Source: Lepidodermella squamata (Eukaryota; Animalia; Gastrotricha). From it: 64,000 nucleotides of DNA. Positions 1 through 9,040 of the stretch are shown piece by piece. The stretch is taken from contig JBLDXI010000024.1 of assembly GCA_047495785.1 (NCBI GenBank), positions 1,860,001-1,924,000 on the forward strand, read 5' to 3'. The number at the start of each line of letters is the position of its first letter. The first letter of the stretch is position 1. The position numbers were made by a program, and so were the translations under genes. The notes beneath the pieces are model-generated. The model was given only the letters and a program-made list of their open reading frames with translations. It made no database searches and was not told where the DNA came from.

Positions 1-974
1 GCAAGCATTGGAACATGGCCCAGGAGTTCGTGGATGCAATCTCTGGGAACAAAATTATTTGTTCAGGTCAATCGGAATTAACGAGACACTCACGGTTCCG
101 GGCTGTGATGTGGCGAAGATGGATGCCGAATATACTGGGTACACATGAATACGCGGTAGGCCAAGCTATAAAGAAAATGCCGTGATGACAGCAACCCAGA
201 GACAGGTCGTAGTTGAAACCCAGTCTGCCTTTTCAGAAAACTCGAGACGTCTTCGAGCTGCGGAATGAACGCAGGCGCGTAGATTCCTTCGTCCTCCATT
301 AGGTTGAAGACACGGATGAATCCGGAGTAAGCATGCGTCTTGTGTAGCTCTTTCAGCTTAGAATATACCGCACGCCAGGTTGACACCTCATCGCTGGTGA
401 ATTCAACTCGTGGAATCGGAGATCCCCTGAAAATGAAGAGTGTGTATAATTCTGTAGGTTAAGAGGAAAATTAAGGTTACGTTTTATGGTTGTAAGCGAC
501 GTTGGCGATCGCATTTCTGCGGGCACGGTAATTGCTGTCATGGAATCCCTGAAATTTGAAAAATTCACCATTAATTTGAATTTCTATCAAGCCGTGACTT
601 ACTGGATGACCAGAATCTTCCGTCGGGTCGAATTTCGTTATGCATTCGAGACATTTATCCAGCTCAGTAATGTCTTTCGGATACCAATACTCGCTTGCAG
701 TTGAATTGTTCGACGATATTATTAGCTCAATATGTGAATCGATCTTGCAGTTCCTCAAAGCATCCAGTAATTCTCGGCCATCGCACGATTCTGTGCTATA
801 GAGTTTAGTTTCCACCAGAAAATCGCGCTTGCTTTGGTTGAATTTGTTGTTTCGAATTTCGAGTCGCTCTACTTCGGCACCATTTATCTCCTTGATGGCG
901 CTGTATATACAGCTGAGGGCTTTTGCTGGTTGTTCAACGCCTTCGATAAGAAAAACGCATCTGTTTTCGCACAT
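1..974 (-). CDS. TH: Tyrosine hydroxylase-like aromatic amino acid hydroxylase (multi-exon; 3' part lies off the window)
   Basis: Spliced exons read [12 protein letters not shown]...[39 protein letters not shown] and [17 protein letters not shown]|[14 protein letters not shown]. SSPxHSPEPDC and HVPMLA match TH better than PAH or TPH. GT-AG introns at about 602-550, 481-428 and 94-43. Confidence 0.85.
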
Positions 975-1034
975 TGAGCTGAGGATTGAGCTTCTTTACC
1001 AAATTACAAAGATATATTCGGGGAAATTTCCGTT

Positions 1035-1070
1035 GAGACTGAGAAATTGACAAAGATCGCGCTGCTTATA
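1035..1070 (-). promoter_or_regulatory. TATA + Inr core promoter of TH
   Basis: Minus-strand TATAAG (1070-1065) lies 30 nt upstream of the A in TCAGTCTC (A at 1040), which is ~65 nt before ATG 974. Confidence 0.55.
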
Positions 1071-1507
1071 TTTGCGTGAAGTGCATACGTGACGAAGTTC
1101 TTCGTGCACCTAATTAGCGGCTCTGGGTATTGTCATCATGTCATGATACAATGGCGCGTCTGTTAAAAAAAACTCGGAATCGGCGGCGAAAGTGTATGTC
1201 TGGATAATTAGTAGGAAAAGTAGAAAAAAATTAACGCGAGCGCCGACAGCTTATTACAGATCCCTTATCTTTTGATGATAATTATAGTCAATGCAAAAAA
1301 TGAATTCGCTTCCAATTATAAGCAACTAGTCTAGAAAAGTTCAAAGATGGCGCAGACGCCTCCCTCACTTTAACCAACAATAAAGCATGTAGTGGAGTGA
1401 GTGCCGTAACGACTTGCCTGGAATAGAAACATGCGCTTCATGCTTTTTGTGAGCTGAAAAAACTGGCGTTCAGTTCTGTCTTTTGATCATCAAGGCAGCA
1501 GACAGCA
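1071..1507. repeat. Cluster-specific non-coding module, copy 1 (upstream of TH)
   Basis: 1325-1507 matches the reverse complement of 6249-6432 (~85-90% by eye) and, more loosely, 6806-6918. 1071-1163 matches 6585-6662. Confidence 0.9.
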
Positions 1508-2094
1508 CGTAGCGGTGATATTAGAAAATACTAGAAGTTGTCGTTTCCATTGTCTGTGCTTCGAATGCGCATTTTTGTATATCATCATCAACTTCAGGCG
1601 TGGTACAGTGGAACCATCCGAAATGACTTCTAATTATAATTTTATTGAAGGCTTATTTTATTTGAACCTATGCAAAGGAGTCCATCAATATGAATAAGGA
1701 AATTCTCTAATTAAAGTTGTTGTTGCGGGAAATAAACCAGTGTTAGGCTGTGAGAAACTTTGAGGCCGATTCTTTGATCAAACTCCAAGCGTATTCTATG
1801 TCCTGTTCGGTGGTTTTCGCCGCACAAATCGCTGAGTAGTTCGGCAGATTTGCAACATCAGCCGGCGTAGGGCGAGGCGAACGGCGAACGGAATAACCTA
1901 TTTCATTAACGTAACTGCGCCCCCCCCTCCTCCATGGGAACTTGAGATTCCAATGATTTCCTCACACCTTGATCGCTATATAATCATGCATCGTGCCCCT
2001 ATAGAATGAACCGTATATTTTATTAAAAAATGAATCAGTCCTGGAGTTTCAGCGATGTTAGAATATCATCATGCACTATGCGACATATATACAC

Positions 2095-3883
2095 TTAATG
2101 TGGCAAGTTGTCCTCTTTCTGCCGATTTTTACAGCCAATTTTCAGTTGAATAAGCGGGCGCCCAGGAGAGAACCGTTCGGCCGCTGACGTAACATCTGTC
2201 AAACCGACGCCTGTTTCCGGTAGGAAAAGCAGGCAAAACAAGCATTCAAGAGCAGCAACGGCAGCAAAAGGCAGGAAGGAATACTGGTGGATTGTGATCT
2301 GCATGGCGGGGAAAATGAAGCTGCTGATGATGTTGCAAGACCAACTGGCGAACATTGACACGCTCATCCCCATTGGTCGAGCGTTTTGATCGAATAACTC
2401 AGCTGCGATGAAGCAAGGTATCGGGCCGGGTCCAGACGCAAAAAACAGGTGAAACAGAGCGAAACCCAAAATGCTCGCTTGGAAAACCTGGAAAATTGAT
2501 TGATAAAAAATATTTGAAATGGATGAGAAAAGCTTACGTTATAGCTCAGGACGATGACCAGCAAAATTTGAGCCAGGGAAGTGCCGAGCAGTCCGATGAT
2601 CATCAAAGGACGCCGTCCAACTCGATCGATGATTATCGCATTGATGACATTTCCGATGAGATTTGCGACTGATACGCCGAAGTTCGCGAGTCCAGCCCTG
2701 TCAGAAGGTAAACCAGCGGAGTAGAGCACGTTGGCTGCATAGAAGAAAACCGGGGCTAGACCGGTCAGTTGAGCGCATATAAGCATGTTCACGACGATAA
2801 TTAGAGGCCACCATAGTGAGCGATTTTTGAATATGGCTTTGACTGAAACTAATTCGACCTTCGCCTCAGCTGCTGAAATTTCTTTCAATTCGACCAACTC
2901 AGCTTCGACTTCTTTCGCCGACCTTCCGCGAAGCTTTTTCAACGCTGACAAATCAGCTGTTAATACTTCATCTTATTGCAACAAGTGAGATCTTCTACCT
3001 TCTATAGCTTGGTCCTCCTTGCCCTGGTCAATTAAAGCTCTAGGACTTTCGACGACAAGAAACAAGGCAGCTCCATCCACTAGATATATGCCAAGTTCGA
3101 ATACTTGTAAATAAATAAAATTAATATGTGGCTAAAACACTAATTATTTGTAAAATTTACGAAATAAATATTGCCACGTTGACTCTTTGCCTAGCACAAA
3201 ACTGAGACCCAGAATGTTAGAAACGAGAAGGCCGAGGCTGATTCCAATGCCGATGAAACTGCCGAGTATACCTCTCAGTCTGCCAGGTGCATGCTCTATA
3301 ATTATCGAAGGCGCGATCACCAGAGTTAAGCCAGCTTGAAACCCTAACACTGTCCTTCCAATGTACAGTGGAATGTGGCTCTCAGTCCAGGGTGTCACAA
3401 ACAAGATCACAGCGCCAGCGCACCCAATAGCAGATCCCAAAATTAAAGAATTCCTCCTTAGAAATTGAATAATTGTTAAACGTTGTCGTGCAATTATTTT
3501 CTAAATTATTCTCACTTTCCAAATTTGCTTGAAATTTTGACTGGAATCCATGTTGATCCGATGATGCCGCCAATTAGGTACAAAGCGACTATAGCAGACC
3601 AGTTCGAATTCAGTTCAGCGCTTGACAAAATTTGGCCAGTTCTCGCAAATGACTGGTTGACGTAGTTATTCATAACTTCAAACGGGGCATTTATCACGCC
3701 TATTATGCAAGATCATTTAAAAAATTAGCCCTGAAACGATTCATCAAAAATATAGTTACCGAGGTTGTAACCGAATAGGAACGAAGAGCCAAGAACGATC
3801 GAAACATTGCAGTAGATCAGATAGAAAGTCCAGCCTCCCGCTTGCTTCTCCTCTGAAACAGCTGATTCACCGGTCTTGCTCAT
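2095..3883 (-). CDS. SLC2A/GLUT-family MFS transporter (multi-exon) with divergent substrate site
   Basis: Motifs GSSFLFGYNLG|VINAP, EHAPGRLRG, VESPR, QLTG..VFFY, DRVGRRPL, GPGPIP, AELFDQNARP and LPET. ATG 3883, stop 2095. Confidence 0.9.
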
Positions 3884-4219
3884 GTTTATCAACTATTCTC
3901 CACTTGCTTATTGTTGAAAAACGTTTTGCGGTAAAAAGGAGTGGGACTATTATGAGGAAATAATATTTTATAATTTTTTGAATGAACGATGTAAATTCGT
4001 CGTCAAATAACTTTTCCAATTAAAATTTTGATTAAAACGCGCTCACATGATTACGGCGAGGAGGCGTGCCGGGGTAGACTGCTCACGTTTTAATAATCTA
4101 AAATAAGATCATACCTTTTCATACCTTAAGCACTCATTGTTCATAGTACTTCGTCCTCGAAGAACATAACACGTTAGCTTCAGTAACCGGTTTTTTCACT
4201 TGAAGAGCTATCACTAATA

Positions 4220-6028
4220 ATGGACGCTGACGAATTTCGCCTGCGGGGCAAGGAGATGATCGATTTCGCAGCTGATTACCTGGAAAACATCAGCGAGAGG
4301 TTAAATATTAAATATTATTAAATTGATCAATTAAGTAATTCAAATGAACAATTAAAGACCAGTTTTCCCAACCGACCTGAAGCCTGGATTTCTGACTCCG
4401 CAGTTACCATCGGAAGCGCCACAGGAACCGGATAGTTTCGAAGCTGTGATGGATGATATAAATCGAGTCATACTACCTGGAGTGACTCATTGGCATTCTC
4501 CGAAGTAGGTTCAATTGTTCCTCTCAATTAAACTAACCAAAGCTTCCTTTGACAAGGTTTTTCGCCTATTTTCAAACAGCAAACTCCTACCCGGCGATTA
4601 TGGCTGACATTCTGTCAGATGCAATTGGATGCATAGGATTTTCATGGGCCTCTTCGCCTAGCTGCACTGAGGTTTGCAATTCAAGTTCTTAAAACTTGAC
4701 ATAATTGAATTACATTTCTCTAATTTAAATTAGCTAGAGACGGTTATGATGGACTGGTTGGCGAAAATGTTGCAACTCCCGGAGCATTTCTTGTTCAGCT
4801 CTGGCCAAAAAGGTGGTGGCATAATTCACGGAACGGCAAGTGAAGCGACATTCACAGCACTTTTAGCCGCCCGCAGTAGAGCAATAGCTCAACAGAAAGA
4901 ACTTAATCCCAATTCAACAGCGGGCAGCGTCCTCGATAAATTGGTCGCTTTCTGCTCTGACCAGGCTCACTCCAGTGTTGAACGAGCTGGTTTGATGGGC
5001 TGTATCCAACATTTCGTGAAAGTCCCGAGTGATGACGAAGAATCCATGCGAGGTGACCGTCTGAAACAAGCGATTGAAACTGCAATAGCTCGGGGTCTGG
5101 TTCCTTTTTACGTTGTAGCAACACTTGGAACTACAAATACCTGTGCTTTTGACAATTTGTTGGAAATCGGCAAAGTTGTCGCAGAATACAATGAGAAGAG
5201 CGAAACGCCGATTTGGCTGCATGTTGATGCCGCTTATGCTGGTAGTGCGTTCTGCTGTCCGGAATATCGGCATTATTTGAGCGGCGTCGAATTTGCCGAC
5301 TCTTTCAACTTCAACCCTCACAAATGGATGCTGGTTAACTTCGACTGCTCTGCCATGTGGTTTAAAGATGCCTCTCAAGTGGTCAGTTGAGAATTCTCGA
5401 AACTTTTTTATTGCTGAAATTGTTGCTTATAAAGGTGGATGCGTTCAACGTCGACCCTCTGTACTTGAAGCACCAGTTTCAAGGGCAACAGCAAGTTCCG
5501 GACTATCGACATTGGCAAATTCCTCTAGGACGTAGATTCAGAGCGCTGAAGCTCTTCTTTGTCCTTCGATTGTTCGGAGTTCGAGGAATTCAGGTTTTTC
5601 ATCTTAACGCATTTACTTTTGTATACCTACTTCTGCTGCATATAGGATTATATCAGAAAGCAGATTGGACTAGCTCATTCATTCGAAAATAAGCTGAAAT
5701 CTGACAAACGATTTGAGATAACGGCAGAGGTCACGATGGGACTGGTTTGCTTCCGATTGATCGAAGTTAGCGATGGTGACGTCAATGGGCCTTCCGAAGC
5801 TCTTTACAAGGCAATTGCGAGCGATGGCCGAATTCACTTGGTTCCGACGAAAGTAAAGTAAGAGCATCTTTTTGCAAAATAAGGTAATCAAATAAAAAAT
5901 GCTATGATTTCAGGGAAAAATTCGTGCTGCGACTGGCGATTTGTGCGGCGAAAACCACCGAACAGGACATAGAATACGCTTGGAGTGTAATTAAAGAATT
6001 GGCCTCAAAGGTTCTGACATCCCAATAA
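4220..6028 (+). CDS. DDC: Aromatic L-amino acid (DOPA) decarboxylase, 7 exons, intact
   Basis: [44 protein letters not shown] lysine motif NPHKW, DPLYLKH and [15 protein letters not shown] (DDC-type, unlike the HDC/TDC ..PLSRRFR). The exons splice in frame. Confidence 0.95.
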
Positions 6029-6248
6029 CGCGGGTTTAAATCCCACAAAAACACTATTATTTTGAGAAAATTTCCTTATTAATGTTGACTGATTCTTAAG
6101 CATTACTTCAAGTAAAATTAAACTCGAATATGATCAAAATGAAAAGACATTTTCCACAGGATCACGCCTGAAATTGATGATGATACAAAAGTGCGCGTTC
6201 GAAGCACAGACAATTGACACGACAACCGCCAGTCTTATCTATTACCCC

Positions 6249-6505
6249 TGCTGTCTGCTGCCATGATGAGCAAAAGACAGAACTGAACGTCAGTTTTTCC
6301 ACTCACAAAAAGCATGAAGCGCATGTTTCTATTCCTGGCAAGTCGTTACGGCACTAACTCTGATACGTGCCTCATTGTTGGTTAAAGTGAGGGAGGCCCA
6401 TATGCGCCATCTTTGAACCTTTCTAGACTAGTAGGTGCCGTCAACACACGAATTCATTTTTTTCTATGGTGACTAATTAGCAAGACATTTACCTTTGCCG
6501 CCGGT
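6249..6505. repeat. Cluster-specific non-coding module, copy 2 (inverted, just 3' of DDC)
   Basis: Reverse complement of the 1325-1507 block, extending into the CGGCGGC..TGTC..TAATTAG..AGAAAAAAATGAA motif. Confidence 0.9.
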
Positions 6506-6576
6506 GCCGACTAGGTGTACCGCGTGCACTAGATTGTTCCCGGCGAAAGTTCGCGCGAAATGTGGTTATTCTTAAG

Positions 6577-7010
6577 CTGCAATTATGCGTGGGAAGTGCA
6601 TAGTTCCTCGTGCAACTAATTAGTAGATTTAGAAATATTCATCATACAATGGCGCGTCTGTCTGGGAACCGCGCTTGAACATATTTTAGCTCAATTTCGT
6701 GTGGATACTCGCCTGGTGTCTTGATCTAGCATATGTCTTGCTAATTAGTCACCATAGAAAAAAATGAATCTGCGTGGTGACGGCAAACCAAACCAACGAT
6801 AACCAACTAGTCTAGCCAAGTTCAAGTTGGAGCAGTGGCCTCCCTCACTTTAACCAAGAATATGGCATAACCAAGAGTGGGTGCCGTAGCGAATTGCCCG
6901 GATTGGAAACAAGGCAGCGGCGGGGAAGGTTGCTATTGTCTTCTTAGTTAGGTAAGTAGAAAAAAATGAACACGCGAGTAGCGATGGCATACGAAAGATG
7001 GCTTATCAAC
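6577..7010. repeat. Cluster-specific non-coding module, copy 3 (upstream of the GNAT)
   Basis: Contains matches to 1071-1163 (TCGTGCA.CTAATTAG, ATACAATGGCGCGTCTGT), 1325-1430 (ACTAGTCTAG, GCCTCCCTCACTTTAACCAA, GTGCCGTA) and 1205-1240 (AAGTAGAAAAAA..AAC.CGCGAG). Confidence 0.85.
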
Positions 7011-7092
7011 GACACTCGGCTGTTTAAGCTCACAGTTGACAGTTCAGCGCTTCAGTCTCCTTCAATAACGCATTCAACTACCCAGAAAGTTC

Positions 7093-7722
7093 ATGGCGAA
7101 TCACCAAGTTGCTGTCAAACTGCTCACCCGCGATCGCCTCGATGAGGCTGTTGATGTGTTGGCGAACTCATTTATGCAGAATCACCTCCCCACAATCCAC
7201 CTCAAACAATTTACTCGCGACAAGTTCCCGATATTCGTCCGAGACTTTATTATCGAGACTTGCATCGATCAACATGTTAGCCTTTTCATTGAAGACTCTG
7301 CTGGTAAAATGCTTGGCGTTGCTGTCGGCGAGATATGGCATATCGAGGAGAATCCTTCTCTGCCTGATCAGGATGAAGAGATGTTCATCCTGATGGGAGA
7401 GCTCCAAAAAATGTTGCCGCAAGAGATGGTTGCAGAATCTTGCAATGGAACAATTTTGCATCTCAGCATGGTCGCGACTCGAGTTGGTGAACATGGCCGT
7501 GGGGTCGCGACTCTGCTGATAAAATCAATGGTCGAATTCGCGCTGATGAATGAATTCAAATACATCTTCGGCGATTGTACATCGGTTGAGACGCAGCACA
7601 TATTTTTGGATAAATTAGGCTTCACCAACGCTGGGGAAATCATGTACGATACATTCAGCGACAAGCTCAAGGGCTGCCCTGGCAAAATTGTTTTAGCGGT
7701 CAAGAAATTAGTCCAAGATTAG
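7093..7722 (+). CDS. GNAT acetyltransferase resembling insect arylalkylamine/dopamine N-acyltransferases (intronless)
   Basis: 209 aa. Features include the N-terminal 'LDEAVDVLANSF' helix, 'DSAGKMLGVAV', the AcCoA motif HGRGVATLLI and 'DCTS..TQHIF.KLGF', as in the iAANAT family. Candidate TTTAAG + TCAGTCTC promoter at 7023-7059. Confidence 0.7.
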   Translation: MANHQVAVKLLTRDRLDEAVDVLANSFMQNHLPTIHLKQFTRDKFPIFVRDFIIETCIDQHVSLFIEDSAGKMLGVAVGEIWHIEENPSLPDQDEEMFILMGELQKMLPQEMVAESCNGTILHLSMVATRVGEHGRGVATLLIKSMVEFALMNEFKYIFGDCTSVETQHIFLDKLGFTNAGEIMYDTFSDKLKGCPGKIVLAVKKLVQD

Positions 7723-8670
7723 GCTGTCGGAATTCGGAATCATGGATGATAAATTATTCGACCCACTGAAGCACATGAAACAGTTATAACTTGATCCATG
7801 AAAGTTCTGATGACATCATATATATAGTAAAAATTGAGCATATTATCAGTAATATTGCGGAATAAATAGGTAGCGTATTTTACGAAATATAAGGCAGGAC
7901 TGAAATAATGTTTTTCGAACTCGGAAAAATAGTGAAAAAATCAAGCAACTTTTCGAGGGAGGCAATTATTAACCCCGAAAACGTGAAATCGAGCTCATCA
8001 GCTTATTTGAGCAGCTTCCAAAAGAATTTTCAGGTACCTGAACCTTTTTAAATCCGCGATTCCGCAGGTGGAAGGCTACTCCTTATCTTTTCGTTAGCTT
8101 CGCGCCAGAAGGGCGACTTTACTATAAATAGCTCTCGCGTATGAAAAGTAAGGCCGCTTCATAACGTGTTGGGGAATACAAGCAGCTATAGATTATCACG
8201 TTCTACGGGCAAGTGACGTCAACTAAACTACCCTTTTGGCGCCGTTTTCAGGCCAGATGATTTTCCTGGCTTCAACCTGATTTTTTATTTTTAGCATTTT
8301 GATTCTCTTTCGATTGTGCGGTCTTGTGTTCGGGAAAGGTCCAAAACAACACAGTGTTGACTTAGTGCTTTCTATTGTTAAGCTAGTACTCCAAATTTAA
8401 TATTTCCTAACCGCAGGTTACAATTTTTCGCTTGCTATGGCATCTAACGCGGCGACTTCAAATTGGTTGTTCTCTACCCTAAAATCAGGTTAATATATTT
8501 TTCTATAACAGCTGAATTGCTCTAATTGCGAATACGGGAATTGTGCCAATGTCCACTTGAAGCTGCTACCAGTCTGTGGCCATCATCAGCTTTACGAAAA
8601 CTGTATTATTTAACGGGTGATAGATGGCACATTCGACTGTCGATTTTGTTCGCGCACTGGCCACCCTGTA

Positions 8671-8997
8671 TTTTTTAAATGAAACCTTCCGAGAGAATTT
8701 ATAATCTTCTATCTACGATATAACCGAAGAAATAGGTACAAAATTTACCGCTGAAAACCCGGAAACCCCCGATAGTTACGGGTTCGGTAATTTTCGGTAT
8801 TTTGCCCGATCGGACCGAATATCTCCGGACATTTTTAATTCCATTAAAATGGGGCATGCTGGATTACGATTCTCGTGATTTTTTCGTGATTTTCGAAACA
8901 TTTTCTGGCCATGAGATGCGACTTCGTCTCTCATCTTAGAGTTTCTGAACCTTTTTCCGTGTATTTTCTTTGCTTGCGTTACTTATGGGACACGTTG
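8671..8997 (-). mobile_element. Tc1/mariner-type MITE family A, truncated copy
   Basis: The reverse complement begins TA|CAACGTGTCCCATAAGTAACGCAAG and is colinear with the full copy at 22654-23041. Confidence 0.8.
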
Positions 8998-9040
8998 TAG
9001 GAATTTTCGAAATTCGATTATTTTTCGGTCTTCTTTCTTA

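Follow-up and report, generated by a model that had tools for sequence, protein, structure and literature searches.

The window analysed here is a 64 kb stretch of the Lepidodermella squamata genome (G000:C24:1,860,001-1,924,000; coordinates below are window positions unless a contig is named), and it harbors a gene cluster made up of TH, an MFS sugar-transporter-like gene, DDC and the acetyltransferase-like gene GNAT (Table 1). This study concerns a stretch of DNA, hereafter X, that is repeated upstream of TH, after DDC and upstream of GNAT. The genome searched amounts to 121 Mb in 151 contigs, with a GC content of ~43% and introns of ~50 nt. No SL1 leader was found in it, and a nematode that uses SL1 was therefore rejected as its origin, short introns notwithstanding. 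Two further clusters are used for comparison: P, a paralogous cluster on the same contig C24, and Q, a third and older cluster on contig C1. The anatomy of the repeats was established with a repeat finder and pairwise alignments. Exons were handled one by one, by reference, and the coding comparisons rest on single exons.

X is composed of block A (~100 nt), block B (~55 nt), the unique block C (~80 nt) and ~80 nt of the left half of a miniature inverted-repeat transposable element (MITE). It is present three times within the cluster, namely upstream of TH (copy 1), inverted after DDC (copy 2, where block A is mostly lost, being present in the P counterpart) and upstream of GNAT (copy 3, with a shortened MITE part). 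In copy 1, block A comprises a TATA-like box (~1066-1080), a core 20-mer at 1098-1117 ending in CTAATTAG, and the part TCATCAT...CAATGGCGCGTC at 1133-1160. An earlier note on this DNA had described blocks common to 1071-1507, 6249-6505 (inverted) and 6577-7010, and had not noticed them elsewhere in the 64 kb; the repeat finder and the alignments bore out the former statement, and the DNA searches, which found no blocks elsewhere in the window, bore out the latter. It had also spoken of a non-coding module of ~200-400 bp. The repeats are real, but the inverted repeat 1176-1833 / 5935-6512 reaches 580-660 bp (78.5% identical, with local stretches of 90%) and takes in the DDC 3' untranslated region (3'UTR) together with the last 93 nt of the DDC coding sequence, its inner edge lying inside the last exon of DDC, so the module is not purely non-coding. 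Its arms bracket the head-to-head MFS-DDC pair.

In the left arm, the copy of the DDC coding end forms a pseudo-exon (1743-1833) whose frame is open here through 29 residues to the stop, whereas translations of the P counterpart are broken by frameshifts and stops. The pseudo-exon lies directly downstream of the last coding open reading frame (ORF) of MFS, on the same strand and with its frame open. Copies 2 and 3 of X together make up a palindrome (6294-6488 / 6733-6911) that separates the 3' end of DDC from the 5' end of GNAT and is centred near the A-copy core. The arms at this locus are 72-92% identical, that is 8-28% diverged, with insertions and deletions. Neither terminal inverted repeats (TIRs) nor target-site duplications (TSDs) were found at the repeat edges 1176, 1833, 5935, 6512, 1060 and 6913.

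Table 1. Genes, copies of X and their components in the cluster (window positions)
Feature	Position	Strand	Remarks and basis
TH further exon	90-386	-	ORF/Pfam-based gene listing
TH first coding exon	477-974	-	ATG at 974; repeat module on its 5' side; ORF list and Pfam Biopterin_H
X copy 1	1060-1471	+	Upstream of TH
Block A copy 1	1060-1165	+	TH proximal promoter region (putative); alignments
Block B copy 1	1196-1256	+	TAATTAG plus TAGAAAAAAAT run
Block C copy 1, unique part	1312-1391	+	Conserved 19-mer at 1359-1377
Old MITE copy, left half	1392-1471	+	Profile positions 5-85 of 194; nhmmer E = 2e-12
DDC 3' flank and 3'UTR copy	1472-1742	-	Left arm of inverted repeat
Pseudo-exon	1743-1833	-	Copy of last 93 coding nt of DDC with stop codon; 91% identical to 5936-6025
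MFS sugar-transporter-like gene	2095-3883	-	Head to head with DDC; the pair is the segment bracketed by the inverted repeat
DDC last exon	5913-6028	+	Distal part 5935-6028 is the inner end of the right arm
DDC 3'UTR and downstream flank	6029-6284	+	Right arm; homology to Q stops at 6157
X copy 2	6285-6512	inverted	After DDC
MITE half, copy 2	6285-6357	-	nhmmer E = 3e-7
Block C copy 2	6358-6432	-	19-mer at 6378-6396
Block B copy 2 and outer end of right arm	6436-6512	-	Repeat finder, alignments
X copy 3	6576-6913	+	Upstream of GNAT
Block A copy 3	6576-6661	+	Core 6604-6623, 1 mismatch; points away from GNAT; near palindrome centre
Block B copy 3	6733-6785	+	Repeat finder, alignments
Block C copy 3	6793-6913	+	19-mer 6839-6857; ends in truncated MITE remnant ~6880-6913
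Extra B-like copy in GNAT 5' flank	6944-6991	+	Repeat finder, alignments
GNAT (acetyltransferase-like)	7093-7722	+	Single exon

Genome DNA searches with 1200-1840, 6480-7092 and 975-1330 as queries gave matches confined to C24:1,861,000-1,867,100 and C24:1,680,900-1,691,500, with two exceptions: the last DDC exon of Q on C1, and a single short match to the MITE on C38. Every genomic match of A, B and unique C lies in this cluster or in P, on the same contig, apart from the A core in Q. The 19-mer of block C (CCTCCCTCACTTTAACCAA) was recovered genome-wide at 0-1 mismatch only in 5 of the 6 C copies, the sixth differing at 3 positions, and matches at 2-3 mismatches were not above the control count genome-wide. 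The core 20-mer of A (TTCYTCGYGCACYTAATTAG) has 6 matches at 0-1 mismatch in the genome, each of them on the side of TH or of GNAT in one of the three clusters. Hundreds of randomly placed copies, which the earlier note had named as the mark of an ordinary transposable element, are not what the genome contains: A, B and unique C occur only at the paralogous clusters. Because of this copy number, the whole module as a dispersed transposable element was rejected.

X as a whole is not a transposable element, yet ~80 nt of it are derived from one. Allowing up to 2 mismatches, we found the MITE motif TTGCCTGGAATAGAAACA 65 times genome-wide (2 times in the control), frequently as inverted pairs ~120 bp apart, and an alignment of fetched examples defines a family of ~190 bp with ~55-bp TIRs. 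Members such as L016:172-367, L017:173-367 and L018:171-356 illustrate this family, whose TIRs contain TTGCCTAGAATAGAAACA, whose flanks are TA-rich and whose motif has at least 65 matches over many contigs. Dispersed copies are thus a property of the sub-part 1392-1471 and not of the module, and the earlier observation that no TIR or TSD is present holds for the whole module only, as 1392-1471 and 6285-6357 each represent half of a dispersed MITE. More MITE insertions are present around both this locus and P, and within the MITE the long version of C stops at a different point from the short one.

P (G000:C24:1,680,900-1,692,130; loci L004, L011, L013 and L015) is an inverted duplicate of the entire cluster, situated 175 kb upstream, with 83-85% nucleotide identity. 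It shares with this locus the three C copies at the same relative positions, the pseudo-exon, the nested palindrome at the DDC-GNAT junction and the orientation of MFS-DDC, and it carries extra inverted copies of its own. The GNAT adjacent to DDC is reduced in P to a remnant flanked by perfect A cores, and an intact GNAT (89% amino-acid identity) lies downstream of TH. Upstream of this intact gene lie a degenerate A (with 4 core mismatches and its TAATTAG gone), a MITE and the 180 nt proximal to GNAT; B and C are missing. This MITE resembles a copy of the one beside the P GNAT remnant.

Q (G000:C1:2,313,900-2,323,050; L032 and L033) has the order MFS(-), DDC(+), TH(-), TH-like(+), GNAT(+), with TH and DDC convergent and a GNAT 81% identical in amino acids, and it serves as an outgroup for the rearrangements. 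It is alignable with this locus only over TH and its upstream region to 1136, MFS-DDC (2005-6157) and the GNAT coding sequence, the region upstream of its GNAT being unalignable. B, C and the pseudo-exon were not found in Q, where the DDC 3' end is single-copy, and no blocks were found at its DDC and GNAT. The presence of X in both this locus and P, and the absence of B, C and the pseudo-exon from Q, indicate that the duplications of X postdate the split from Q and predate the split from P.

As a neutral yardstick we used the 4-fold degenerate sites of six exons, which are 79.6% identical between this locus and P (338 sites) and 66.7% between this locus and Q (219 sites). The blocks are 78-84% identical to their positional counterparts in P, which equals the neutral value. 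Within this locus, the TH-side and DDC-side copies of C share 83-89% identity, compared with 81% between the TH-side copies of this locus and P and 68% between the DDC-side copies of the two loci. In a tree of the C copies, the TH-side and DDC-side copies of this locus group together (support 0.95), and in P the DDC-side copy joins the GNAT-side copy (support 0.71). This grouping by locus and not by position points to arm-to-arm gene conversion rather than position-specific constraint. Palindromes and inverted segmental duplications are known to be homogenised by arm-to-arm gene conversion, and the present case resembles them in that the copies within a locus are closer than positional counterparts in P; it differs in that the arms measure only 0.2-0.65 kb, are already 8-28% diverged and would be converted in a patchy manner. 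The 4-fold identity between this locus and P is itself uneven, ranging from 67% (DDC) to 91-93% (MFS exons; 4746-5390 against the P and Q counterparts), which suggests patchy gene conversion between the two clusters as well.

A three-way alignment upstream of TH shows the TATA-like sequence TTATATTTG at a distance of ~95 nt from the ATG, with the A core another ~25 nt upstream of it. From its position and conservation, block A is best read as the TH proximal promoter; as it is also copied before GNAT, a real TH regulatory piece would have been duplicated there. The earlier note had listed TAATTAG sites at 1110, 1205, 6473, 6616 and 6741, all of which are present. The motif is enriched in the window as a whole (24 matches versus 8.0 +/- 3.0 expected), and 4 of the 5 occurrences of the palindrome CTAATTAG in the window fall inside the module. 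TAATTAG is retained in 5 of the 6 copies of A and in 5 of the 8 copies of B, and the module sites go back to two ancestral ones, located in A and B respectively; they were copied along with the blocks and therefore do not count as independent events. The CTTATC (GATA) sites, which the earlier note had also listed, were rejected as a signal of the module: CTTATC occurs 28 times per 64 kb, the interval holds 3 sites for 2.6 expected by chance, and in the alignments no CTTATC was found at homologous positions among the copies.

We consider it reasonably probable that the repeats are mainly by-products of local duplications that reshuffled the cluster. From the anatomy, number and ages of the copies and their MITE content, all shown above, we infer a mechanism in which X would have undergone local segmental duplication during rearrangement of the cluster, after the split from Q and before the duplication 175 kb away. 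One conceivable route is that the MFS-DDC segment was inverted through staggered breaks, with inverted duplication of the sequence at the breakpoints; another is fold-back replication, which yields palindromes with a short spacer; and either may have been followed by a second duplication. The copies would afterwards have drifted at an approximately neutral rate, with gene conversion between the arms. As a side effect, an element of the TH proximal promoter, the 20-mer ending in CTAATTAG, would have come to lie ~470 bp upstream of GNAT, where A copy 3 may lend this gene some TH-like regulation; here too we infer the regulatory effect. That the locus is prone to rearrangement is plainly seen in the extra inverted copies of P, the MITE insertions and the differing ends of C.

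The route through staggered breaks agrees with the presence of inverted, non-repetitive copies flanking one segment and including a partial gene, the copy of the last DDC exon. In Drosophila, staggered breaks account for the inverted duplications of non-repetitive sequence, including parts of genes, at the breakpoints of 17 of 29 inversions (59%; Ranz et al. 2007, PMC1885836). Both systems have inverted host sequence with a partial gene at the two ends of a segment, and in both the copies decay by substitutions and small deletions (PMC1885836). Unlike the Drosophila inversions, the segment here is only ~4 kb long (two genes), a third and direct copy exists, and the outgroup paralogue Q is not in the opposite orientation, so that an inversion is not demonstrated at this locus. 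The cluster behaves like, and probably represents, a breakpoint-associated inverted duplication combined with palindrome formation and gene conversion.

Several observations weigh against an origin of the repeats as rearrangement by-products. In Q, MFS-DDC occupies a different position and points the same way relative to TH and GNAT, so that the arrangement predicted before an inversion is not seen and one additional rearrangement or more must be assumed. Several orders of rearrangement would fit the three loci, and none is singled out. Moreover, in column permutation tests covering 5-6 copies, the region of the C 19-mer is more conserved than its flanks across the six C copies, with far fewer changes than permuted columns would allow (p = 0.0015), and the TCATCAT...CAATGGCGCGTC part of A is likewise conserved above its flanks (p = 0.0015). 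The A core and the TATA-like box are kept upstream of TH in all three clusters, and in Q they are kept where the remaining intergenic DNA no longer aligns. A purely neutral reading fails for these cores in A and C, and part of this DNA is therefore probably functional.

The earlier note had proposed a copied enhancer co-regulating the cluster. On one version of this reading, a TH enhancer or promoter block would have been copied to DDC and GNAT and kept for a shared homeodomain-type input through TAATTAG. The blocks are specific to this cluster and its paralogue, all three copies are retained in both loci, the A core persists upstream of TH in three clusters despite unalignable surroundings, most TAATTAG sites survive, cores inside C and A are conserved, and in such a compact genome the 0.5 kb upstream of TH are likely regulatory. 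A functional shared module of this kind nevertheless appears rather unlikely. Whole-block divergence is neutral, the copies are homogenised per locus rather than conserved by position, and the repeated unit includes copied DDC exon and UTR sequence and half a MITE, the cargo expected of a structural duplication; the GATA sites add nothing beyond chance. The module is also not found at every member gene of the paralogous clusters, as DDC and GNAT of Q lack the blocks, and in P the intact GNAT has a ruined A core, with a MITE instead of B and C, the perfect cores standing beside the GNAT remnant. What stands of the proposal is that a putative piece of the TH proximal promoter was copied before GNAT; the neutral divergence and the GNAT genes of P and Q partly contradict the rest. 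In copy 3 the TH promoter-proximal element lies 470-515 nt ahead of the ATG of GNAT, reversed and with its TATA-like box degraded, so that any role there would be enhancer-like and independent of orientation. Co-regulation of the cluster by the copied blocks is plausible on these sequence comparisons, with the paralogous loci in part speaking against it, and only a few short conserved cores are candidates for a shared-enhancer role. A working shared enhancer seems doubtful, and it is more doubtful still that the TH block (the A core with CTAATTAG, perhaps the C 19-mer) was duplicated to the DDC 3' and GNAT 5' flanks and kept there as a working enhancer. The dopamine-pathway genes of C. elegans follow a terminal-selector logic with shared ETS, Dlx and Pbx sites, short motifs with separate origins at genes that are not linked, whose function was confirmed with reporters and mutants. 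The likeness is limited to TAATT-type homeodomain sites near TH, DDC and a downstream enzyme gene, and to the idea that a single input serves several genes of a pathway; here, by comparison, the units are duplicated blocks of 100-650 bp, and no site is present at DDC or GNAT of Q.

The contribution of the MITE family raises the possibility of a low-copy composite transposable element, or of a module mobilised by the MITE it contains, since ~80 nt in each of copies 1 and 2 come from the dispersed family, further MITE copies surround both loci, and the long and short versions of C break inside the MITE. We regard this as very unlikely, however, as only half of the MITE is present, internal to the repeat and not terminal, A, B and unique C have no copies outside the two paralogous loci, the module edges lack TIRs and TSDs, and host gene sequence (DDC exon and UTR) is included. 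Gene flanks derived from MITEs offer a parallel in the match of the 80-nt piece to a dispersed ~190-bp family with ~55-bp TIRs, but the element here is a half that appears to have been duplicated passively inside a larger host segment. The long inverted arms with short spacers in both loci, kept alike by gene conversion, would also suit a palindrome that acts as RNA or DNA, either as a hairpin or small-RNA source from DDC read-through or as a switch that flips MFS-DDC. Such a role appears slightly more improbable again: no conserved structure or covariation was detected on either strand of block C, Rfam gives no relevant match, the arms are only 72-92% identical here and MFS-DDC has the same orientation in both loci. 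A structured RNA was rejected, as RNAalifold on the six C copies returned weak energies for the two strands (-9.1 and -7.2 kcal/mol) with a positive covariation term and no covariation support, positions 1-9000 matched nothing in Rfam at E <= 1 apart from IMES-4, a chance hit, and ARAGORN detected no tRNA. Finally, multiple displacement amplification (MDA) creates inverted chimeras, and the L. squamata genome assembly was probably made from MDA-amplified DNA, which could make the repeats an assembly or amplification artefact. The published assembly combines MDA with HiFi reads, and its authors found no chimeric contigs (PMC11660948). Because the arms are 8-28% diverged with insertions and deletions, where chimeras would be identical, and because the architecture recurs independently in P, an MDA chimera was rejected, and an artefact of this type is extremely improbable.

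To our knowledge, clusters of consecutive pathway enzymes are rare in animals, and we know of no described route to their co-regulation. The three paralogous clusters provide a dated series that records how repeated duplications, inverted as well as direct, remodelled the TH-MFS-DDC-GNAT cluster along with MITE insertions and gene conversion. If the copied piece of the TH promoter is active at GNAT, it would be a concrete case of a regulon built by promoter duplication, and if the enhancer was retained, three consecutive enzymes of an animal N-acyl-dopamine pathway would be co-regulated, making a step in the assembly of a metabolic cluster visible. If the copied piece is inactive, the repeats would be ordinary, tidy scars of rearrangement and a caution that motif-bearing repeats near pathway genes need not be enhancers.

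For GNAT, a word-based protein search, which covers only word-sharing proteins of 115-365 aa, found no close kin, and an exact-product look-up for a transcript encoding it gave no match. In P, a ~1.1-kb insertion (C24:1,687,270-1,688,395) splits the copy of the DDC 3'UTR repeat, at a place that corresponds to window positions 1714-1731. The DDC region of P (L004:2223-2549) also contains a 124-nt inverted repeat, 98% complementary and with a 79-nt spacer, which may be a further MITE or a very recent fold-back.

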